This document shows, in pieces, positions 19,001 through 64,000 of a stretch of 64,000 nucleotides of DNA. The notes beneath the pieces are model-generated. The model was given only the letters and a program-made list of their open reading frames with translations. It did not search any database and was not told the DNA's origin. Both the position numbers and the translations under genes were made by a program. Location of the stretch: contig NIVC01000708.1 in NCBI GenBank assembly GCA_002269645.1, positions 62,001 through 126,000 of the forward strand, in the 5' to 3' direction. The stretch comes from Macrostomum lignano. Lineage: Eukaryota. Each line of letters begins with the position of its first letter. The stretch's first letter is position 1.

Positions 19001-22000
19001 CCAGGTGCAAACTCCGCGACGATAGCCGAGAGGAAAGTCGCGAGTTCGAGCCACCCCGGACATCGGCGCGGAGCCCCGGATGACCACCGGCTCTGCCGGA
19101 CAGTCGGGTGAGGAGGCTTCGGCGGTCGACGGCTGCGGAGGCCGCGGTCGGGCTGCGGGCGGCTCCGAGACGGGTGGCGCTGGCGAAGGCCGCGGCGGCT
19201 CCGGCGGCACAGCGGACCGGCGGAAGAACCGGTAGGTGGCGGCAAAGCCGAGCTCGCCAGGGCCGACGACGCCGTCGGAGCGGAACTCGAGCGTCAAGTA
19301 GCGGCCCTCCGACCAGAAGTCATCGACGGAGCGGCTGCCGCAGCGGGCGGACACGCGGTTGCTGAAGTCGGCGCCGTACCCGTCGAAGATCAGCAGGCGG
19401 TCGCCGGCGAAGTCCAGGCCGCAGGTCCTGTCGGCGGGGTGGCGGCGGAGCTGGTTTCCTAGAAACATGCTTGTACTTTTCGGCATCTGAAAATCTTGGG
19501 ATCTAAAAAACTCGGGTTCTGAAAAATTTGGGATTCGAAAATTTTAGGAACAGAAAAACTCGGGATCTAAACATTTTGGGATCTGAAAATTCATGATTTA
19601 AAAATTTAGGATCTGAAAATTTCTGGGATCTGAAAATTGTGGGATTTGAAAAATTTGGGATCTGAAGAATTTGGGATCTGAATCCCAAATCCCAAATCTG
19701 AAAATTTTGGGATTTAAAAAATTTGGGATCTGAAGAATTCGGGATCTGAATCCCAAATCCCAAATCTGAAAATTTTGGGATCTGAAAAATTCAGGATTTA
19801 AACAATTAAGGATCTGAAAAATTAGGGATCTTAAAAATTTTGGGATCTAAAAAAGTCGGATCAGGATTTTTGGGATTTATAAAATTTGGGATCTGAAAAA
19901 ATCTGAAAGTGTGGATTTGAGCTCCGTCGGCTCACCCAGTTCCGGTGCCCAGGCTGAAGCTGCTGAAGCTGATGCAGACGGTCTCGTCAGGCTCGGCAAA
20001 GAACCGGTAGATGACCCGAGTGAGCGGCGGGTAGGCGCTGGGGAAGTCCGGGCTGGTGACCGCGCCCTCCTTCTTCCCGCTGCTGCTGAAGAACTGCAGC
20101 TGGCGCTCCGAGTACTGCCGCGGCCGTTTCGTTGGGTAGCCTGGGGGCGGCGCGGCGGTTAGGGCAGTTCAGATTGACAGGTGGGCTGGAGTGGGTGGGA
20201 CTGCAGGACCTTCAGAAGTTCCCGTTTTTTTCGAATCCTGAGGTCCTTCACAAGGTCCCGTTTCTCGAATCCCGAAGTCCTTCAGAAGGTCCCGCTTCTC
20301 AAATCTTGAGGTTCTTCAGAAGGTCCCGTTTCTCGAATCCCGAGGTCCTTCAGAAGGTCCCGCTTCTCGAATTCTCAGGAACTTCAGAAGATCCCCCTTC
20401 TCGAATCCCAGGGCACGCAGGGTTTCCGGGGAACGAGCTGGCAGACACCCTCGCCAAGAGGGGCGGCTCTGGCTCTTTCTTCGGCCCTGCCCCCCTGGTC
20501 CCTATGCCCTTGACAGTCATCAATCGTCAGATCGACGACTGGGCTGACTCCCTCCACAGGGACAGATGGGCGGGCACCCAAAACTGCCGGCAATCTCGTG
20601 CCGCGGTTCCTTGCCCGTCTCACAGGCTCAGAAACATCCTTCTAAACCAGAATCGGAAGGATATCCGAGCCCTTGTCATGACCCTTACCGGCCATGGCTA
20701 CCTCGCCAGGCACTGCTTCCTCCGAGGCGACCTCGAGAGCGAACTTGCCCCTTTTGCGAGTGCGACAATGAAGATGCTCAGCACTTTGTCTGTCACTGCC
20801 CTTTCTTTAACAGAGACCGGCTACGCTACCTCAGGCCGAACCCGTCCATTGACGAGGTCTGCCAGCCCGACAGCATCTCACGGCTCATCCAGTTCCTTCG
20901 GGCGACTAGACGAGCCAGTTTCTTCCCAACGGAAGATCACGCTGCAGGACGGACCGGCGGACCACCCTGACCGGCCCCACGCCTCTGCCTGTCTGCGGGC
21001 CTTCAGGGGCTAGCGGAATGGGCGACCCTCGCCTCCCCGCTGTGTCTACGGACCACCCTGCAGCTAAGTCAAGTAAGTCCCCCTTCTCGAATCCTCAGGT
21101 CCTTCAGAAGGTCCCGCTTCTCGAATTCTCACGAACTTCAGAAGGTCCCGTTTCTCAAATCCTGAGGTCCTTCAGAAGGTCCTGTTTCTCGAATCCCGAA
21201 GTCCTTCAGAAGTTCCCGCTTCTAGAATCCTCAGGAACTTCAGAAGGCCCTGCTTCTCGAATCCTCAGGAACTTCAGAAGGCCCTGCTTCTCGAATTCTC
21301 AGAAACTTCAGAAGGCCCCGCTTCCCGAATCCTCAGGGACTCCACAAGGTCCCCCTTCTAGAATCCTCAGGAACTTCAGAAGGCCCTGCTTCTCGAATCC
21401 TCAGGAACTTCAGAAGGCCCTGCTTCTCGAATTCTCAGAAACTTCAGAAGGCCCCGCTTCCCGAATCCTCAGGGACTCCACAAGGTCCCCCTTCTAGAAT
21501 CCTCAGGAACTTCAGAAGGCCCTGCTTCTCGAATCCTCAGGAACTTCAGAAGGCCCTGCTTCTCGAATTCTCAGAAACTTCAGAAGGCCCCGCTTCCCGA
21601 ATCCTCAGGGACTCCACAAGGTCCCCCTTCTCGAATTCTCAAGAACTTCAGAAGGCCCCGCTTCCCGAATCCTCAGGGACTTCAAAAGACATCTTAGGCA
21701 GGCTTTCCCCAAATCCCCAACCAATGACTCCCTCAATTCTGACCTTCTCCAAGCGCCGCTCCCGCAGCCACCCTGTCCATAGGCTGGGTGGGCTGCAGCA
21801 TGTGCCTGGCAACAAAGGCGAACCGACCAGCAAAGCCAGAACCGGTGTGCTCATCTGAGTTGGCCCGAAAGCGGAGCTTGAGCAGGCCGGCCGGGCTCAC
21901 CACCTGCTGCCGGGAGGCGGGGGCGCAGCGGGTGGAGAAGCTGGCAAGCAGGTTGGCGTCTTCCTTGTCGGAGTCGAAGATGAGCACTCGGTCCTGGCTG

Positions 22001-32026: not shown

Positions 32027-32097
32027 GCATCGGTGGTTCAGTGGTAGAATGCTCGCCTGCCACGCGGGCGGCCCGGGTTCGATTCCCGGCCGATGCA
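32027..32097 (+). tRNA. trnG: tRNA-Gly (GCC)
   Basis: 71-nt GCATCGG...CCGATGCA cloverleaf, anticodon GCC, intact A and B boxes, T-run terminator downstream. Confidence 0.97.
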
Positions 32098-33305: not shown

Positions 33306-33376
33306 GCATCGGTGGTTCAGTGGTAGAATGCTCGCCTGCCACGCGGGCAGCCCGGGTTCTATTCCCGGCCGATGCA
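33306..33376 (+). tRNA. trnG: tRNA-Gly (GCC) variant, possibly pseudogene
   Basis: Same as the 32027 copy except variable loop CGGC>CAGC and T-loop TTCGATT>TTCTATT (B-box change). Confidence 0.8.
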
Positions 33377-43553: not shown

Positions 43554-43624
43554 GCATCGGTGGTTCAGTGGTAGAATGCTCGCCTGCCACGCGGGCGGCC
43601 CGGGTTCGATTCCCGGCCGATGCA
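43554..43624 (+). tRNA. trnG: tRNA-Gly (GCC)
   Basis: Identical to the 32027 copy; TATAAA ~33 nt upstream, T-run downstream. Confidence 0.97.
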
Positions 43625-53688: not shown

Positions 53689-56320
53689 GAAATCGTCTAC
53701 TGAACAGTAGCAAGATAAGAATGCTAAACGAATTTCTTTACTTTCGGAGAAAATGGAAAACTTTATTGTGTTGTGCGTCTACAGGTGAGGACACCTCCCA
53801 GTGGACTGAAGGCACTAGTTCACAACGACGAAGAACTAAAAAAACAGACCCTAACCTATTGCTACGTAGTTGTGTTCGAATCTCACCTATTTGTATGCGC
53901 ATCAACCCACCCTTGTTAAGGCTTTTTCGTTTTCAATATTTCTAATTCTTCAAGCGCCTTGCTACCAGCATTCTACAATAATTTTATCATATTTTCCTGT
54001 CTTTAGCTTTTTAAATCAAGAATGTACTTTTATCTGTTTTTTTAACTGTTCACCTTCGTTTATTCGTACAGACATCGCTTACTAACAAGTAGCGTGCAAC
54101 GATTTTGAAGCGATTTTTATGTTAGCAATCGCTCGAAAGTTGCGCAATATAATTGTTGAAAAAATTTCAAAGCTTGTACCAGATACTTTTCGTGCCGGCT
54201 GAGCCAGTTCTCACCTATGAATAACCTCTGATTGGTCAGATATTGACAATAGTTCAGTTTGATTGACAATATTGACAATTACCAAGCACGGCGGTAAGAC
54301 ATCGGGGAGGGAGGCAGAAAAGGTCAGCGATGATGCGGGCGTCAGTCATGACTTCGTACTCGCTGCCGGCGGCTGATGGTCTCGGAGGCAGCCTCGGACG
54401 ACCTTGGAAGGTCCATCAAAATTTAGCTGACATTGAGGGTAGTCGTGATCCCAGATCCCTGCATCCGACATCTCACATCCGAGCGTTCGCAGTGCAGCGA
54501 GCAGCTCACGGTGTAGCTGGAGTTCTGTTCTATAATCTGAGTGAACATTTAACCGGCCACTTTGGGCATTAAATTCACTGATCTTGGCACTTTATGTGAA
54601 GATAAAGCTGTGTCCCCAGTTAAGTGAGCGGCTGTTCCTCTCTGCCCTTCACAGTCACAGAGCTGATCATCGCTGGCTCTTTCAGCTGCACTGCGAACCA
54701 GTGAAACCCGCCGTCTGCTTGGCTCCTGTTTTTAGAGTGGAAAAACCTTAGCTAGTGGCATCTCTGTAGATGGTCTCATCAGCTGACTGATTTCTAGTGT
54801 AAAAGCAGCTAGGTGGGGCCCGGATCAGGTGCAAAACTGGACTCCTGCGAATCGGGAACTGGCCTTGCAGTAGATGCAGTGAAAATTTCTGAACACGAAC
54901 TTGAATGTAGTAGCGCTTGCTAAAATTATACTCAGTATTCAGTAACAGTCAAAAATTTCACCCCCAAAGCAAGATGAAGATGAAAATTTTCTAACTAATT
55001 GCGACAACTTCTCACTCACTCACAATCCAACCCCCAATTTACGCAACTAAGTCGCCGCGAGGAAGGGAAAGTGATTGAATCAGTAATAAACGTCACTCGA
55101 ACGAAATCATAACAATTTATTCTTTATGAAATATGCAGTTAGAATTGCGATAACGCGTGTGGGATCCCCTCACGCAGAAGTGCGGCGATTCTGCGGGGCA
55201 TCCCCAGGATGAGGCGGCGCAGAAAGTCCTGGGGAAGCTGCTGCCAAGCGTTTTCAATGGCATGACGCAGCTCGGCAACATTCTGTGGTGGATTTATTTT
55301 CGAATGCTGCGTTAGGAAGTCTCAGACATGCTCGATGGGATTCATGTCTAGGGACCGGCAAGGCCAGCGCAGTGCGCAGCTGTAGCTGTTCCTTCAGTTG
55401 ACTAACAGCATCGGCTTGGTGTGCCGGCGCGCGTGGTCATCCTGGAGAACCCCCAAATGGCAATAAGCTTCGCGCGCGTGCCGTTATGCCGTAATTTGCA
55501 TCACGCGCAATAAGTGAGAAAAATTCATCTCTCTTTGGAGGGTGGAACAGTTGCTGAGTGTATAAAATGAATAATTCGTTTTTACAAGGAGCAAAAGACT
55601 GGAGGACGATTGCTAATTGACTGGCTGTGGCTGGGGTAACTTGGCCTGCGTGCACGCCGGGGTGGTGGGTGCTGGGTTGCAGAGTTGTTTTGATGTCTGT
55701 CACTCTCGCTGAATGTACTTTGCTAGCGCGGGGTGGGGGTTGGGGTGAGTCAGGCGATCGATAATAAAATGGTTTCAGTATAAAGCTGCCTTTCAGCCTG
55801 CAATGTTGTTCGTGCTTTTGGTCAAAATACATGTAAAGGACTTTATTTCACTGGGATTCAGAATTTTTTAAGAAGTTCAGCTTATCACATTGAGATTTAA
55901 CTGTCAGAAAATAAGTTTAACAGCTCAAGCCTTTAGACAGTCGGGCTGCATCAGGTCACGTGTACTCCAGCAGCTGTTGGCAAGTCCGAGATCTCATTAT
56001 ACTCTTCCGTTCCTGCAACAGGAGAAGCAGACGGCTGCTCGGGCTTAATTCTTTGCTCTGCTTTCTCACTGCGACTCTGCAAGGTCGGAGATATAAAGTG
56101 TCGGAGATATGAAGTGTCGGAGATGTGAAACACCAATGAACGATGACTTCGAAAGCTGTCCGACTGATCTAACTGCAGAGAGAGCGGGCGCCACTGGCTG
56201 TGTGCTTGACTTACTTGACTTAGCTGCAGGGGGCGTCCGGCGGATGCAGCGAGGAGGCGGAGGAGACCGCCCATTCCGCTAGCCCCTGGCGACCAACGAC
56301 TTCCGTTGAAGTGGTGTCGC

Positions 56321-59300
56321 TCAGGGGGACCCGTCGGTCTCGCCTGCAGCGCGGTCCTCCTCACCGACGGTGGGGAAGAAATCAGCTCGTCCGGTGTCCC
56401 TGAGGTACCGGGCGAGCAGCGGGATGCTCTCGGGCCTGCAAACGTCGGAGAGAACCGGGTTTGGCCCGAGGTGAGTAAGCCTGGCCCTGGTGAAAACCGG
56501 GCAGTGGCAGATAAAATGCTCGGCGTTTTCACTGCCTGAGCGGCAGAAGGGGCACCGCTCCTCGGGTACTTGGCCCTAAAGGAAACGGTGGCGAGAGAAG
56601 CAGCCATGCCCGGAGAGGGCCATGCTAACTGCTCTGAGGTCTCTGCGGTTGAGCCTGAGGGGGGCTCTACGCAGGAGAGGAGAGGGGCAGGGGACGGCAG
56701 CACGGGATTGCCTACAATTCCGGGTGTCGTGCCACCTGCGGAGATGCTCGGAGTCAGCCCAGCGCTTAACGCGGGAATTGATCACCGAGGCGGGGATGGG
56801 GGCTCCCGGGCCCGGCCCTAGCAGCGCGCCGGCGGAGCCAGCCTTGGCCAGCAGGTCAGCGCGCTCGTTGCCGAGGAAGCCGGCGTGGCCCGGGATCCAT
56901 CTGAGCTCCACTTGGTTGCCTAGCGCAAGCCCGTTGAGCTGGGTGTTGCAGTCCAGGACGGACCTGGAGCTGGCGGTGCTGCGGCAGAGGGCCCGAAGGG
57001 CAGCTTGGCTGTCAGAGTGAAAAATAAATTTCCGGCCGCTAAGCTGCCTTCGGCGCAGCTCTGCCGCGCAGGAGCTGATGGCAAGCACCTCGCTCTGAAA
57101 AACACTGGAGTTGAGCCCAGTGTGCTGGGAGTAGCTCCACACCACTTCTCCCTTAAAGAAGACGCAAGCTCCGAAGCCTGAAAGACCATGCCTCATAGAG
57201 CCGTCAGTGTAACAGTGGACTTCAGAATCGCTCCAGCTGTCACTCGCCTCGTGTCGAGGCTGAATGGTGACCTTATACCTTTGGCTCAGGAGAAGGGTGG
57301 CTGGGATCGAGTCCGTGAGGATGTTGAGCCCGCCACCCTCCTCGAGAGCCTTGAGGCAGAGGTCAGAGTGCGGGATAAGCGACCGCTTCTTAAAGGCCCG
57401 CACTTTCTTGAAGGCCACCCCAGCATCCAGAAGACGCCGGGTGCTCTTCGCCGCCTCTCCTTTGATATAAATATCCAGAGGAGGGGCACAGAGGAAGGCA
57501 TTCATGCCTTCAAAAGGAGTAGAGGGTGGAGCGCCCATAGTCATGCGGCAGGCTCTGCCCTGGATTTTGTAGAGAGCGTCGAGGTTGCTCTTGACGCTCA
57601 GGCCGCTAGCCCACACGAGGCTGGCGTAACTGATCGAGGGGCGGATGATGGCAGTGTAAATCCACCACAGCTTCCTGGGGGTGAGCCCCCAGGTGGTGCC
57701 CACGGCGCGCCTGATCTGAGCCAGTACAGCCAGGGCTTTTTTGGCTTTAGTTTGAATGTGCGGAGTCCAGTTAAGCCTGTGGTCCAGAGTGAGGCCCAGG
57801 CAGCGGACCTGCTTCTCCATGGAAATATTCTTTCCATAGAGGGTGAGGGGCTTAATGGTCCAGAGCAGTTTGTTGGTAAACATGACTGCTGTGGTTTTCG
57901 ACTCTGAGAGTCTAAGGCCACATTGGTTTGCCCAACGCTCCGCTCGTCCCAGAAAGCCCTGCAGAAGGTCTCTGATGGTATCAACCGAGGGGCCCGCGCA
58001 TATCGCGGTCACATCATCGGCATAGCCCACCTTGAGAATGGGGTCGTGGAGATCACTGCAAAGCAACTCATCCATGACCATGTTCCAGAGAACGGGGGTG
58101 AGAACGCCGCCCTGGGGGCCCCCTTTCAGGACAGGCACCGAAAGAGAGCTGCCGTTCAGGTGGGCCACAACAGTGCGGTTCCGGATCATGAACATGATCC
58201 ACCGGACAAGGTGAGGGTGCGTGGCCCTGGATTCCAGGGCTCTGCAAAAGGCCTCGAAGATGACGTTGTCGAAGGCCCCCTCAATGTCCAGGAAAAGCGT
58301 GTCGCGACTTTCCTAGTCATTTCTTAGTTCACCTTCAATTGTCTCTGTTTACTCCGTTTTCTCTCTCTCTGTCTAGCTCAATCTTGTTATTCTTATCTCT
58401 CTCTCCCTTGCTGCGTTCTGATTGGCTCTCCGTTCTCGCCTCTTTCCTCAGTCGCGCACTCCACCCCCTCTCTTTATTATTTTGGGCTCAACCCCCCAAA
58501 GTTAAATGTTCTATAAATATATCGGTTTGGGCCCTGCGCCCACTTACTGCTCATCCTGCTCCTTCAATTTAACTCCAATTAAATAGTCTTTAGTTTAGTA
58601 TTTTTTCTACAAAGCGAGAGGGCAAAGCCGCTGCCAAGAACGGCCCTCTCCAGGAAGTCAACAATGACATGGAGAGCACTCTCGGTTGACCTGCCCGCGC
58701 GGAAGGCGTGCTGGTTCTGCGAGAGTGGGAAGCGCTTCAGCTCGACCGAAAGTAGGCGCCAAAGCACCAACCTCTCGAGGAGCTTGAGGCAGAAAGAGGT
58801 GAGGCTGATAGGCCTGAAGGCCTTCACCGATTGGTAGTCGCTCTTTCCAGGCTTGGGGATAAAGACCACCCGGGCCTCTCTCCACGCAACTGGTACATAG
58901 CCCAGCTCCACACAAGCTCGAAGGAGACGACAGAGCAGGTCCAGGAAGCGGTGGTTTTTTACCGCCTCGTGCAAGAACGCTGGGTAGATGCCGTCGGGCC
59001 CAGGCGCCTTGAACGGGTTAAAGGACCTTGCCGCTCTAATAATGCGGTCTTTGGTGATCATAGACTTTGCTAGGCCTTGCCCTCCCACTGTGTGGTCGGG
59101 CGGGCCCTGCTGAGTCGGAGATTTAGGGAAAAAACTGTTGAGCATGAGCTCTAGAGTCTCTTCCGAACTCTCTGTGACCGAGCCATCAGGTCTCTTCACA
59201 ACAGAGAGTTTAGAAAAACGGTCATTAGTGAGTGCCTTAACCACGCGGGCTACGGGGCGAGAGCCCTCAAGCCCTTCGCAATATTGGCGCCACTTGGCCG

Positions 59301-60338
59301 TCTTGGCCCTTCTGACTTGGCCCTTAAACTCGTGGATCGCACGGGTGTAGGCCTCTATATCAGATGGGTCTTTGGTTTTGAGTGCTCGCCTTTGGAGGGT
59401 CCTGGCTCGGCGCCGAAGGGCCCCGAGCTCTGGGTTCCACCAGGGAGCAGATTTCTTGCCTTTATAGGCCTTTAGAGGGCAGGCTGCTTCAAAGGCAGTG
59501 GTGATCGCCCCGCCCAGGGAGGAGGCGAGATCATCCACCACCTGGCAGTCAGAGAGGTCACTGGGGGGTCAAGATCCCGAAGGCCGCGGCTCAGCTTCGA
59601 GCCAAAGGCGGCCCAATCGGTGTTCCTGACGTTCCGACTCCAAGTGACCTTAGGCTTTTGCTTGGTCGGCCCAATGCAAAAGCGGATAAAGCGGTGGTCC
59701 GAGAGCGAGTCCTCGTCCCACACTCGCCAGCCCGTAACTGCGGAAAGCAGTCCGGGTGAGGCGATGGTGGTGTCGATGACTTCGGCCCACCGCCCATTTT
59801 TGAACGTTGGTGCATTGCCCACGTTACAGAAATTGAGGTTTGTGCTGCTGACGTAGGCCAGCAGCTCCTCGCCTCTGTTATTGGTGTTCTTGCTGCCCCA
59901 ATGCAGGTGGTGTGCGTTCACATCCCCTGCAATGAGCAGCTCGAACCGTCGGGATGCGGCATAGTCAATGAGGTTGACTAGTGCGTCGCAGACTACTGGG
60001 GCATCGCCTGGGAAATAGGCAGATGCTACCAGCGCAGGTTTATTTGGAATGAGGTTATTGATTTGAACAACACAGATGTCCCCAGTCGAGAGATCAGGTC
60101 TCATCCATGCTTCAAAAGCTTTTGCAGCAAAGACCAGAGATCTTGGGCGAGGCTGAGAGTCCGCCATGCAAAAACAGTGGTAGTCAGATGGCACATTATT
60201 TGGCTTACCTTTAGTCATCCAGGGCTCCTGCACGAAGACCAGGCCCGGAAGCTGTTGCTCTGTCGTGCGCATCAGGTTGACTGACGCCGCCACGCAGTGC
60301 TGAGTGTTGATCTGCAGACACCAGGTAGCCGCTGGCAT
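56321..60338 (-). pseudogene. LINE ORF2 (AP endonuclease - reverse transcriptase - RNase H - CCHC), disrupted
   Basis: Frameshift at the G6 run 59563-59568; solo-LTR insertion 58300-58611; nonsense TAG at 56576-56578; true stop 56321-56323. YADD, YTDGS, HSDSQAAL, WIPGHAG and CPFC..HFICHC motifs are present. Confidence 0.9.
58300..58611 (+). mobile_element. Solo LTR (312 bp), BEL/Pao-like by TSD length
   Basis: TGT...ACA ends; 5-bp TSD AAGCG at 58295-58299 and 58612-58616; TATAAA 58512-58517; ATTAAA 58578-58583. Removing it restores RT GFALSLFLDIEGAFDNV. Confidence 0.85.
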
Positions 60339-60390
60339 CAGTGCAGATCGGGTGTTGCAGTCGCCAGGAGTTCCTCCTCCTCCTCGGCGC

Positions 60391-61854
60391 TCACCAGCTT
60401 CGGGTCGGGGTCACCGGTGTCCATGGGCTCTTCTTCAGCAAAAGGCCCCGGTTGGTCGGAAGGCAATAGGCAGCGTTCGCCGCCCTTCGCCCACCAGCCA
60501 TGGGGTCCTCCGCTTCAGACTGGCCCAATGCCCTGGAGCAGCCAGCCGCCTGGGCAGGCGGGTCCGTCTCCAGTCGGCCCTGCCCCGAGGGGTTGGGCCC
60601 AGCTGGGACATCCCCACCCTCCCTGGACGAACTGGTGCGCCTAGGCGTCCCGGCGACCTCTCTCCTCAGCTGGGTGATTTTGGCGGTACGGACTGCCTCA
60701 GCTGCGCGCTGGTACAGGCCGCGTCGCTTGGTGCTGCGTGCCGGGCGTCGGTCTCCGCCCTCAGCAGCGCGCTCGGCTTTACCCGCGCGGCCGTGCTGCC
60801 GGGCGGGGCGGTTTGCTTTGGCAGCCTGAGCAGAAGCTCGCGCCACGGCCCCGGCTGCTTCGGCATTCCGCCCGCCCTGCTCACCACCACGGGGAGGGTC
60901 GGCCTCGTAGGAGCGGATACGCAGCTTCCAAAGGCCGACGTTGATGAAGCTGCCGTGCGGATAGCGCCTCATCCAGGCGTCCGACAGCCCCAGGATGGCT
61001 GTGAAGCCAGTGCCGTCGGTGCGCTTAAGGGTGTCATGCACCACTAGGCCCGCGGCGGGAAGCTCCCGGTTGACTGCTAGCAGTCCTTTCCGGAGCTCGT
61101 CAGCAGAGGTAACGACGCTCCTGGCCGGAACCCAGATTCGATGCCTCTTGGTCCGGGGGCGTTCGTCCTCTCTGCAGAAGGCTAGGTTGAGGTCCCAGCT
61201 CTGCTCGGACAGCAGCTCAAGGAGCCGCCGACCCGAGTCAGCATCACTGGGCCAAATGAGAAGGCACGAGTCCCTCGTTGCATTCAAATGAATGTTCAGA
61301 GGCGTGCCCTTCAGAGTTTGCTTCCACAGGAGGCCATCAACGGCACCTCTCACCTGCTTCAGCTGATCGGGAGACAGGCGCGCGTCCTTCCCCAGAATGA
61401 CAACCGCCGGTTGCCTCTTTGCCGCATCAGCGTAGGAGGCCCGGGGGTCGGTGGAGCATTTTTCAGGTGGGCTGTCCACCCTCCCGGCTGCATCGGCCTC
61501 CCCATCCTGGACAGGGGCTTCAGTGGGCTCGAGGCCCTCTTCCGCCACCGCCCCAGATTGGGAAGCTTCCGCTGCCGCGGGCCGTTGGCCCCTGGCGCCG
61601 GTTAGGCTTCCGCCCTCCTTGGCCCGCCTCGCCTTGTTAAGTCGACGGCGGGCAGCTCCTGAGGTGGTGCTCAGCTGCTTGGCAGCTGGAGTAGCAGGTG
61701 TCTTCTCGGAGGCACCGCTCAGAGTTGGCTCCACGGGTCTCGCCGAGGCGTCCCCGATGGTAGCAGGTGGTATGGCCGCGGAGTCCACGGCCCCAGCCGA
61801 GGCCGGAGGCACTGTGTCATCCACAGCCGGTTGGGTACTTCGGTTAGAAGCCAT
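60391..61854 (-). CDS. LINE ORF1 (nucleic-acid-binding, DUF4780-like), probable frameshift near the C-terminus
   Basis: First ATG 61854 (MASNRS); SYADAAK, RIWVP...ELRKGLLAVNREL...GLWKLRIRSY; no zinc knuckle. An alternative frame gives an acidic tail ending at 60338-60340. Confidence 0.75.
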   Translation of the reverse strand: MASNRSTQPAVDDTVPPASAGAVDSAAIPPATIGDASARPVEPTLSGASEKTPATPAAKQLSTTSGAARRRLNKARRAKEGGSLTGARGQRPAAAEASQSGAVAEEGLEPTEAPVQDGEADAAGRVDSPPEKCSTDPRASYADAAKRQPAVVILGKDARLSPDQLKQVRGAVDGLLWKQTLKGTPLNIHLNATRDSCLLIWPSDADSGRRLLELLSEQSWDLNLAFCREDERPRTKRHRIWVPARSVVTSADELRKGLLAVNRELPAAGLVVHDTLKRTDGTGFTAILGLSDAWMRRYPHGSFINVGLWKLRIRSYEADPPRGGEQGGRNAEAAGAVARASAQAAKANRPARQHGRAGKAERAAEGGDRRPARSTKRRGLYQRAAEAVRTAKITQLRREVAGTPRRTSSSREGGDVPAGPNPSGQGRLETDPPAQAAGCSRALGQSEAEDPMAGGRRAANAAYCLPTNRGLLLKKSPWTPVTPTRSW

Positions 61855-62084
61855 TGGCTGGAAGTAAAAAGGTGGGACTTCCTGCAGAACACAGGCAAAG
61901 AGCCGCAAGGCCGCAACCCCAAACCAAGCGGCAGGCCCCCAAAAAGCGAAATACCACCCTGCGGGGGGACCCAAAAGCGCAAGGGGAACCGTTAGCGACC
62001 AGACTACTCCCTGGTCAAGCGTCCATCAGCACGGAGTTACACTGGGACATTAGAGGGTGCGTTTATATGGTCACACCAGGACCC

Positions 62085-62229
62085 GGCGCCAACGAATTAG
62101 CTCGGCAAGGCCCGAGAGCCTGCCTTAACACCCACGGGACGAGTACCCTTCGAAGTGCGCCTTGCAGGGTGAAAATCAGGAGACAGAGTCTCTTTAGCTA
62201 TCAGCCCGCCAGGGGAGGCAGGTGTGAGC
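62085..62229 (-). ncRNA. HDV-like (delta-like) self-cleaving ribozyme
   Basis: P1 GCUCAC (62229-62224)/GUGGGU (62135-62130) with G1.U wobble; P2 CGAA/UUCG extended by GGCGC/GCGCC; P3 GGG/CCC; L3 UACUCGU; P1.1 AC/GU; P4 GGCAGGC/GCCUUGCC; J4/2 GAGCUAA with catalytic C at 62100. Folded by hand, activity untested. Confidence 0.85.
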
Positions 62230-62717
62230 ATCGCTGGTTGGGATAAGGGCCATACCATGCAGTCTCATACTGCACAGATAGTTCACCACGCCATTGCGTG
62301 CAGGACCCGGGGTCCTGGGGGCAACAGCCCCGGCCTGGCTGTGTGCACTGATTGGAACCGGATTCCAGGTGTCAGAGTTCTGGAGTTCAGGGAGCGTTCG
62401 TAGAGAGCTGCAGATAAGACTGTCCGACACTCTCGGACAGTTTCTTCTCTCCAGCCTCTGATCTCCATCACTTTTGATTTGCTACACAAGCTGAGTAGGA
62501 AACCGTCCCTGCTCAAGTTCTGCAGCCAGATCAGTCGGACAGCTTTCGAAGTCATCGATCATTGGTGTTTCACATATCCTACATTTTATATCTCCGACAC
62601 TTCATATCTCCGACACTTTTAATATCTCCGACACTTTATATCTCCGACACTTTATATAAATAGGCAAACAGATCCTGCAAGTAGACATCCTGCAAAACAG
62701 ACATCCTGCAAGCAGAC

Positions 62718-64000
62718 TGACGCGACCCAGACAAGACTTGTTTTAGTTTGAACGATAACGCAGCGAACTGATATATTTGTTGAGTAAAAAAATCACAACG
62801 AAGAAAAGCTATATTCAGTTATTTAAATACGAAGTGGTATAAAACGAAATTTGAGTTATCGATAAAAGTTAGAGTAGAAAGTACGTTATGTGCGCATTGA
62901 TGTACGCATGAGTGGGGTGCACGCTTGGCGTGGTAAGCAGGGCACAAAGTGAGTCAAAGTTTAATAGTCAATAGGCAGCGACAACCCCCCAACACGTCAT
63001 CTTCCCCGTCCGAACCATTCGGAATTGATCAACGGTAGGATCTGATCCTGATACCAAGGACTACTTAAGAACACAGGACGTTACACTTGCAAATATTGGC
63101 AGAATTCTAAAAGGCCGCTTTGAATGCATGTGTCTATGGTTTTAGTGGCCTTTTTGCTTAGTAATTCGCATCGCAGCGTAGCATGATACTCATAACCCAT
63201 AAGTCTACGTTAGAGCACCAAGCAGACAAGATCGCAAACAGCTCACTTTATTGTGTTCTCTGGATCTTTTATTTCTTTCTTCAAATTAAATTATCAATTG
63301 AGTTATACAAGATGCCGACGAAGTGTTGCGTTCCAGGCTGCACAAGCAACTACACACACACTACACATTATACACATTGCTTCAAATAGCAAAAAGGCCA
63401 CTAAAACCATAGACACATGCATTCAAAGCGGCCTTTTAGAATTCTGTTCTTAAGTAGTCCTTGCCTGATACATGTACGCCCGGAGACGCCCGGATCCTTG
63501 TTGAATGAGGGCGGTATTCGAGCCCTTCTGCAGGAGAAACTCCGCCTTTTCAGGAGGCAGTCCGGCGGCGGGGACGTACCAGATGCCCGATTCGATCGGC
63601 GTGCGCATGGTAATGGGATTTCGAAACTGCCGACCCATCAGCTCCGATGGGCTGTGCGGACGTCCTGCATGCGGGATGCAGCGGTAGTTTAGTAGAAGCC
63701 TGGCCAGGAATTGCTCTCGTACGTTTCTCGACGATCCCAGCCCAGAGAGGCCTTCTTGATAGATTGGACCATTCGATGCCGTTGGACTGAGGATGTAGTG
63801 GCGGGGTCTTGATGGGGCGGCAGCCGATTCTCTCGAGCCAGCCGGTCAGTTCAGCATCATGGAATTCTGCCGCGTTGTCGCTTACCAGCACGTCTGGGAC
63901 TCCATTGCGAGAGAAAACGTCCTGGAGCACACGCTTCACGGTTTCTGCGCTTCTATCTGGAACTCGCACGGCCTCTGGCCAGCCCGACATTGCGTCCACG
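62718..64000 (-). mobile_element. 3' end of a Ty3/gypsy LTR retrotransposon (integrase C-terminal half, PPT, 3' LTR)
   Basis: Integrase WPEA..VLQDVFSRNGVPDVLVSDNAAEF..TPPLHPQSNG, frameshifted afterwards. PPT GGACGGGGAAGA (63000-63011) abuts a 282-bp LTR 62718-62999 with TGACG...CGTCA ends. Continues beyond the window. Confidence 0.88.
63055..63463 (+). mobile_element. Non-autonomous P-superfamily element with a THAP-domain stub
   Basis: CAAGGACTACTTAAGAACA terminal inverted repeats; 8-bp TSD CCTGATAC at 63047-63054 and 63464-63471; MPTKCCVPGCTSNY at 63312; inserted in the gypsy integrase tail. Confidence 0.88.

Follow-up and report, generated by a model that had tools for sequence, protein, structure and literature searches.

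Self-cleaving ribozymes of the HDV-like kind are an established route by which the 5' ends of LINE transcripts are processed, and a candidate on the minus strand of a Macrostomum lignano contig raises the question of whether a LINE family of this flatworm encodes such a ribozyme in its 5' UTR and, if so, where the RNA would be cut. The stretch of DNA that we analysed, hereafter the window, is 64,000 nucleotides long, and positions are counted from its first letter. Our analysis suggests that the 5' UTR of this LINE family probably encodes an HDV-like ribozyme with the nested double-pseudoknot fold, with catalysis and role argued by analogy with known systems. The candidate lies in a LINE copy with the following features (further parts of its 5' UTR are given below):

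62335..62346, minus strand: upstream copy of a 12-bp target-site duplication, GCACACAGCCAG, the longest exact match between both flanks
56206..62334, minus strand: LINE copy, about 6.1 kb (from ORFs, Pfam domains, tail repeat and target-site duplication)
62230..62334, minus strand: 5' leader with four local hairpins (fold z = −1.36, not significant)
60391..61854, minus strand: ORF1, 487 aa, starting at the ATG at 61854
56576..60338, minus strand: ORF2, in three pieces (from the ORF list and Pfam)
59472..60338, minus strand: ORF2 piece with EN (AP-endonuclease)
58579..59541, minus strand: ORF2 piece with the N-terminal part of RT
56576..58195, minus strand: ORF2 piece with the C-terminal part of RT and RNase H
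3' end of the element, minus strand: LINE 3' tail, found as the tail repeat (TAAGTCAAG)x2
56194..56205, minus strand: downstream copy of the target-site duplication GCACACAGCCAG, abutting the LINE 3' tail repeat

The flanking 12-bp direct repeat is perfect (62346–62335 versus 56205–56194), which fixes the element at 62334–56206 and its 5' UTR at 480 nt. In a protein search, ORF1 showed 94% identity with a UniRef protein from Macrostomum lignano, while ORF2 matched the Pfam families Exo_endo_phos_2, RVT_1 and RNase_H; the clade is placed no finer than this APE–RT–RNase H architecture, a setting in which HDV-like ribozymes are known (PMC3774820, PMC3185411). A preliminary description of the locus had called the element dead, rightly so: ORF2 is frameshifted near 59472–59541, its RT domain is split between '...GFAL' and 'FLDIEGAFDNV' by a purine-rich insertion of ~0.3 kb (~58300–58590, minus strand; no terminal inverted repeats were found when looked for in this insertion), and the C-terminus of ORF1 is frameshifted relative to its closest relative. 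The 5' location in the LINE that the same description gave to the ribozyme holds in part, in that the core is within the 5' UTR but not at the element's 5' end, which the target-site duplication sets at 62334. The leader (62334–62230) was also considered as a known small RNA captured via template switching, a reading rejected for want of any Rfam match.

The canonical HDV-like core occupies 62161–62085 on the minus strand and, read directly from the letters, is made up of the following segments (with the corresponding letters of L002, a homologous contig, where they bear on a segment):

62149..62161, minus strand: 5' strand of P2, GGCGC-A-CUUCGAA, with bulged A62156 (kept in L002 as A85)
62146..62148, minus strand: 5' strand of P3, GGG
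62139..62145, minus strand: L3, UACUCGU, with the reverse-wobble U and G and with C62143 and A62144 of P1.1
62136..62138, minus strand: 3' strand of P3, CCC
62130..62135, minus strand: 3' strand of P1, GUGGGU (identical in L002)
62128..62129, minus strand: J1/4, GU, the 3' half of P1.1 (G62129–C62143, U62128–A62144)
62104..62124, minus strand: P4 hairpin, 6 bp (GGCAGG 62124–62119 / CCUUGC(C) 62109–62104)
62097..62103, minus strand: J4/2, GAGCUAA, with candidate catalytic C62100 and, at +3, A62097 (GCACUGA in L002, with C148 and A151)
62085..62096, minus strand: 3' strand of P2 (from the pair table)

All core elements follow in the correct order for a nested double pseudoknot (P1-P2-P3-(L3)-P3'-P1'-P1.1-P4-J4/2-P2'), and the order, coordinates and letters given earlier for the core proved accurate, including P3 GGG/CCC, L3 UACUCGU and a J4/2 with CUAA. 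P2 is a 12-bp helix (62161–62149 with 62096–62085) of ten standard pairs, a tandem U.U and the bulged A62156; the loop that closes the 3-bp P3, L3, contains the U and G of the reverse wobble as well as the P1.1 C; P1.1 joins L3 to J1/4 through two pairs; and the J4/2 cytosine stands directly before the 3' strand of P2 with an A three nucleotides on (C62100-U-A-A62097; C148-U-G-A151 in L002). Constrained positions of HDV-like ribozymes include the U20.G25 reverse wobble (PMC3774820, PMC13635239) and the catalytic C, and the A three nucleotides downstream of the latter contacts P3 (PMC13635239).

We assessed the rarity of this arrangement with a strict descriptor built from generic family features: a 3-bp Watson–Crick P3; a 7–8-nt L3 of the form U.C.CG; a P1 3' strand of 6–7 nt with G as the next base; a P4 with 5 bp or more; C-N-R-A immediately ahead of the 3' strand of P2; and 4 bp or more of pairing between that P2 strand and the bases that immediately precede P3, with no requirement for a P1 5' strand. 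The descriptor matched once in the whole window (both strands), at the core site, and once in L002. The numbers of matches expected by chance were 0.03 per 128 kb at the composition of the window and 0.075 per 128 kb at that of the LINE (400 Markov simulations in either case), or about 3 × 10−4 per 480-nt 5' UTR; the descriptor being post hoc, written after the candidate had been seen, these figures are a bound rather than a P value. The motif search that had been proposed earlier finds only the core site in the window, but no counterpart in Rfam: at the gathering score and at E ≤ 10, no HDV-like model matched the window, a 501-nt slice of it, a 166-nt slice, L002 or a second related contig, L001, and the scans gave just three tRNAs and weak noise from miRNA models, with no match at or near the gathering threshold for any curated family of HDV-like type, the HDV ribozyme, CPEB3 and drz-Agam among them. 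Rfam models of HDV-like ribozymes are lineage-specific and unable to encode pseudoknots, so the miss counts against those sub-families alone.

The post hoc origin of the descriptor and the Rfam miss would fit a GC-rich 5' UTR that resembles an HDV-like core by accident. The small number of matches expected per 5' UTR speaks against this reading, as does L002: the same motif stands at its homologous place with both bases altered in six pairs, and, its ORF1 being just 45% identical, L002 is not a contaminant copy of the same locus. Chance is thus close to refuted.

Relatives were sought through ORF1, and a search with the protein and one with an ORF1 profile, both in a protein collection, recovered the same relatives each time (at least four, two of which, L001 and L002, have DNA); the candidate lists of the protein searches may have been filled up by low-complexity stretches of ORF1. 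Further contig look-ups, one of them for a piece of the window's ORF2, yielded no record. The ORF1 profile found no relatives in metagenome contigs or viral contigs, and when the antisense ORF lying over the ribozyme was used as query, to catch spurious gene calls in other copies, nothing was returned. DNA patterns of the core and UTR gave only chance matches in metagenomes, GTDB genomes and IMG/VR: those in the metagenomes and IMG/VR were rejected because the rest of the motif is absent, and the seven in GTDB, all in bacterial MAGs, are presumed from their hosts alone to be chance.

Conservation and covariation are judged on one informative homologue, L002, a Logan contig from a separate sequencing run. 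Its core, at positions 81–162, has the same place in the 5' UTR as the window core and likewise precedes a conserved block of the 5' UTR and an ORF1 starting MASN. The two cores are nearly identical in L3 (UUCCCGU in L002, UACUCGU in the window), P3, the P1 3' strand, the GU of J1/4 and the UAA, and they have in common the U and G of L3, the C–G pair of P1.1, the P1 3' strand, the C-N-R-A of J4/2 (CUAA in the window, CUGA in L002) and the bulged A of P2. When the core pairs of the window were compared with L002 (n = 23), 11 were identical, six had changed on both sides and still paired (two inner P2, two outer P2 and two P4 pairs) and two had changed on a single side; P4 differs by two pairs altered on both sides and one altered on one side, and two positions of P2 that are U.U in the window are Watson–Crick in L002. 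Aligned with MAFFT and kept in register, 93% of cells pair, and sliding the 3' partners by 1–3 columns lowers this to 41–49%. A catalytic centre that is frozen, with peripheral helices that covary, is also what is seen in the R2 ribozymes of Drosophila, silkmoths and other animals including planaria, in which P3, L3 and P1.1 are conserved in sequence and the other helices covary (PMC3774820), and mainly on this ground we accept the core as a genuine HDV-like module. The conservation of pairing in other family copies, on which the preliminary description had made its claim depend, is thus borne out for the core, with covariation, in a single homologue.

The second relative gives a different picture, since L001, although closer in ORF1 (63% identical), has only the downstream UTR block in common with the window. 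No HDV-like core was found in the 334 nt of its 5' UTR, and where the core would stand (L001 4–185) there is a ~96-nt tandem duplication with units that are 91–98% identical. A 'GGGUAC' in L001 was considered as P3/L3 and rejected, because the part of L002 to which it aligns is downstream of the ribozyme, and because a 3' strand of P3 is missing. Either the module is not universal in the group or the L001 contig stops short of it, and the duplication points to 5' UTRs being exchanged as modules among these LINEs, or to an artefact of assembly.

The conserved part of the 5' UTR downstream of the ribozyme has one further structured feature:

61997..62016, minus strand: conserved hairpin GACCAG-GGAGUAGU-CUGGUC, identical in L002 (283–302)

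This hairpin sits in a strongly conserved block (about 62056–61990) that is partly kept in L001. A hammerhead was considered downstream of the core (CUGAUGA in L002, CUGAUGG in the window) and rejected, with neither a GAAA core nor an Rfam match. Separately, L002 has a long GC-rich hairpin between ORF1 and ORF2 (2049–2130) with weak, sub-threshold matches to several miRNA models.

Where the RNA would be cut depends on P1. In HDV-like ribozymes this helix has 6–7 bp, its 5' end is the cleavage site, and it normally opens with a G.U wobble. Two 5' strands were weighed as partners for the 3' strand GUGGGU:

62224..62229, minus strand: P1 5' strand GCUCAC of the preliminary description, with 6/6 pairs (G62229.U62130 through C62224–G62135)
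62162..62223, minus strand: the J1/2 insert that this strand entails, 62 nt, with two to three hairpins, no closing helix and z = −1.6
62164..62168, minus strand: compact P1 5' strand CCUGC, followed by a conserved linker AA (62163–62162)

The first of these belongs to the architecture proposed in the preliminary description, with a 6-bp P1, a 62-nt J1/2 filled by three hairpins and a cut at 62230/62229. GCUCAC does pair with GUGGGU (6 bp, G.U first, two wobbles); it is the sole upstream G-initiated 6-mer to pair perfectly, forms the most stable of the options and puts the canonical G.U at the cut. Long J1/2 inserts are known in LINE ribozymes (216–498 nt in silkmoth R2, PMC3774820; Agam-2, PMC4908430), and we reason that the distal end of the 12-bp P2 is within reach of a long linker but hard to span with two nucleotides. 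However, such a strand is expected by chance: as GUGGGU contains only G and U, half of all bases pair with each of its positions, and a G-initiated 6-mer pairing with it occurred in 85% of shuffles (P = 0.85) of the 173 nt from the element's 5' end to P2, a stretch in which three perfect 6-mers with any first letter are actually present. The closest counterpart in L002 (GCUCCC, 54–59) has a C.U mismatch, and P1 mismatches go with loss of cleavage (PMC3774820). In addition, GAU (62232–62230) is able to pair with GUU (62129–62127), giving a 3-bp extension of P1 past the cut that would displace P1.1; extension of P1 across the cut is reported to lower cleavage (PMC3185411).

The insert raises a similar difficulty, in that folding partly reproduces the three hairpins, but their stability is not unusual and no helix closes them. 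Active ribozymes with a large J1/2 insert have it closed by a P1.2 helix, and unstructured inserts cost up to about 1000-fold in rate (PMC4908430). The likeness to drz-Agam-2 of Anopheles, which has a large insert between P1 and P2 (PMC4908430), would hold only if the GCUCAC P1 is right, and whereas P1.2 pinches P1 and P2 together in the large Anopheles ribozymes, no closing helix is predicted for the Macrostomum insert.

The compact strand, by comparison, pairs 5/5 both in the window and in L002 (CUCGC, 74–78), within a block YYYGCAAG that is conserved between them, and the two differences between the strands are Y-to-Y changes opposite G. The resulting P1 would have 5 bp and no G.U wobble, leaving U62130 unpaired or opposite C62169 (in L002, U73 opposite U111). 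A C–G opening pair is not disqualifying, since the product of the active L1Tc ribozyme of Trypanosoma cruzi (L1TcRz) starts at C1 in a G–C-rich P1 (PMC3185411), a precedent for a compact P1 of this kind. The objection here, from our own structural reasoning, is that two linker nucleotides would have to span to the far end of the 12-bp P2. MFE folding cannot choose among the options, because P1 and P2 cross. On balance, we rate a P1 closed by the compact CCUGC, with a putative cut at about 62170–62168, as a serious candidate at somewhat under even chances; the GCUCAC architecture is possible at slightly lower odds; and the remaining probability goes to a P1 closed by neither strand. The assignment of the cut to 62230/62229 is accordingly not supported, depending as it does on a chance-level strand without a perfect L002 counterpart, with a conserved compact alternative at 62168–62164.

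The preliminary description had also singled out P1.1, arguing that an A–U pair in place of the usual C–G was a compensatory change unlikely to arise by chance. In the window, P1.1 consists of C62143–G62129 plus A62144–U62128, and in L002 of C–G plus U.U; given this U.U, the change is one-sided within the family and not a conserved compensatory pair. A–U and U–A pairs in P1.1 were, moreover, already known in active ribozymes (PMC13635239): in fast, crystallised HDV-like ribozymes from C. briggsae and Ackermannviridae, P1.1 is a U:A pair plus C:U or U:U, and mammalian CPEB3 has a non-Watson–Crick pair at the second P1.1 position (PMC13635239). Neither comparison involves a LINE-borne ribozyme, and the P1.1 of the window and L002 is within their range by pair type, not position by position. 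L1TcRz likewise has a weak P1.1, of 1–2 bp (PMC3185411). The A–U pair is within known variation and adds nothing new.

If the RNA folds and works as HDV-like ribozymes do, P2 would stack on P3, L3 would provide the U.G reverse wobble together with the P1.1 C, the GUGGGU strand would form P1, and the general acid would be C62100 of J4/2 (CUAA). HDV-like ribozymes are characterised by Mg2+-dependent scission at a specific site, with a 5'-OH and a 2',3'-cyclic phosphate as the resulting ends. If the case resembles those of R2, L1Tc, Baggins and RTE, a cut 5' of P1 would detach the LINE RNA from an upstream transcript, and the product would be an RNA with a 5'-OH and with the folded ribozyme at its head.

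Where the core sits in the element agrees less easily with that analogy. The candidate cuts (62229 or about 62169) fall 105–165 nt inside the element, whose 5' end is at 62334, and not at or upstream of the 5' end as in the R2, L1Tc, Baggins and RTE type. Since the 5' end given by the target-site duplication is upstream of both candidate cuts, the RNA that served as template for this copy was uncleaved. Possible reasons for this escape are slow or partial cleavage, cleavage that serves translation rather than the template, and lost activity; for the window copy, the tandem U.U in P2 may weaken the ribozyme.

L1TcRz, compared by description, is alike in having an HDV-like fold in the 5' region of an ingi-clade LINE with AP endonuclease, RT and RNase H (PMC3185411), but it occupies nucleotides 1–77, cuts at +1 and overlaps an internal promoter, whereas the Macrostomum core starts about 165 nt inside the element. 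R2 ribozymes, in which J1/2 can be very long, have 5' processing of LINE RNA as their role (PMC3774820), and R2 itself is site-specific, has a single ORF, is co-transcribed with 28S rRNA and is cut at or upstream of its 5' junction; the Macrostomum LINE, by contrast, has two ORFs, an APE endonuclease, an RNase H, a MITE-like insertion site and a leader upstream of the cut.

One way to accommodate the retained leader is that the conserved HDV-like fold does not cleave, any more or ever, and is instead a 5' UTR module for cap-independent translation or protein binding, or that the ribozyme is active in the family and has decayed in this dead copy. Such a reading would account for the 105–165 nt that the element retains upstream of the putative cut, and is in keeping with the lack of a convincing canonical P1 common to the window and L002, the tandem U.U in P2 of the window copy, the strong conservation of the remaining 5' UTR and the proposal that HDV-like folds promote translation of LINE mRNA (introduction, PMC4908430). 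Yet at 45% ORF1 identity there is no change in the catalytic C, its +3 A, the L3 U and G or the C–G of P1.1, as would be expected with selection on catalysis, and this argues against a non-cleaving fold; we consider this explanation unlikely. Also improbable would be an internal position by design, in which transcripts start at 62334, a cut 105–165 nt downstream removes the capped leader so that an mRNA without a cap, beginning with the ribozyme fold, is translated, and only RNAs that escape cleavage copy the whole element, with the competing P1 strands at 62229–62224 and 62168–62164 forming a switch between the two fates.

The preferred reading, an HDV-like ribozyme encoded in the 5' UTR of the LINE family, would add a free-living flatworm (Macrostomum) and a two-ORF APE/RT/RNase H LINE to the hosts of these ribozymes, and among the papers searched none ties Macrostomum to an HDV-like ribozyme. 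A core well inside a copy with ends set by a clean target-site duplication is modestly unusual, and, should the RNA cleave, the element would decapitate its own transcript, making it a test case for the balance of cleavage, translation and template choice.

The LINE is inserted within a foldback or MITE-like repeat (62519–62657 and 56084–56179), the inverted arms of which are 92% identical over 96 bp and both continue into tandem repeats of 16 bp (GTCGGAGATATGAAGT); another tandem array, with a 15/16-bp unit, occupies 62672–62717. Next to the LINE, an ORF that runs off the end of the window (63550–63999, minus strand) has an integrase core domain (Pfam rve, E = 2.8 × 10−9) and is probably part of an LTR retrotransposon or DNA transposon. 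Farther away, at 20664–21079 on the plus strand and in the opposite orientation, the 3' end of a related LINE is represented by a divergent fragment with 68% identity. Finally, the window contains a small cluster of three tRNA genes (32027–32097, 33306–33376 and 43554–43624, plus strand; 63–67 bits), two of them identical and the third differing at two positions, with an anticodon loop, CUGCCAC, that is consistent with tRNA-Gly(GCC).
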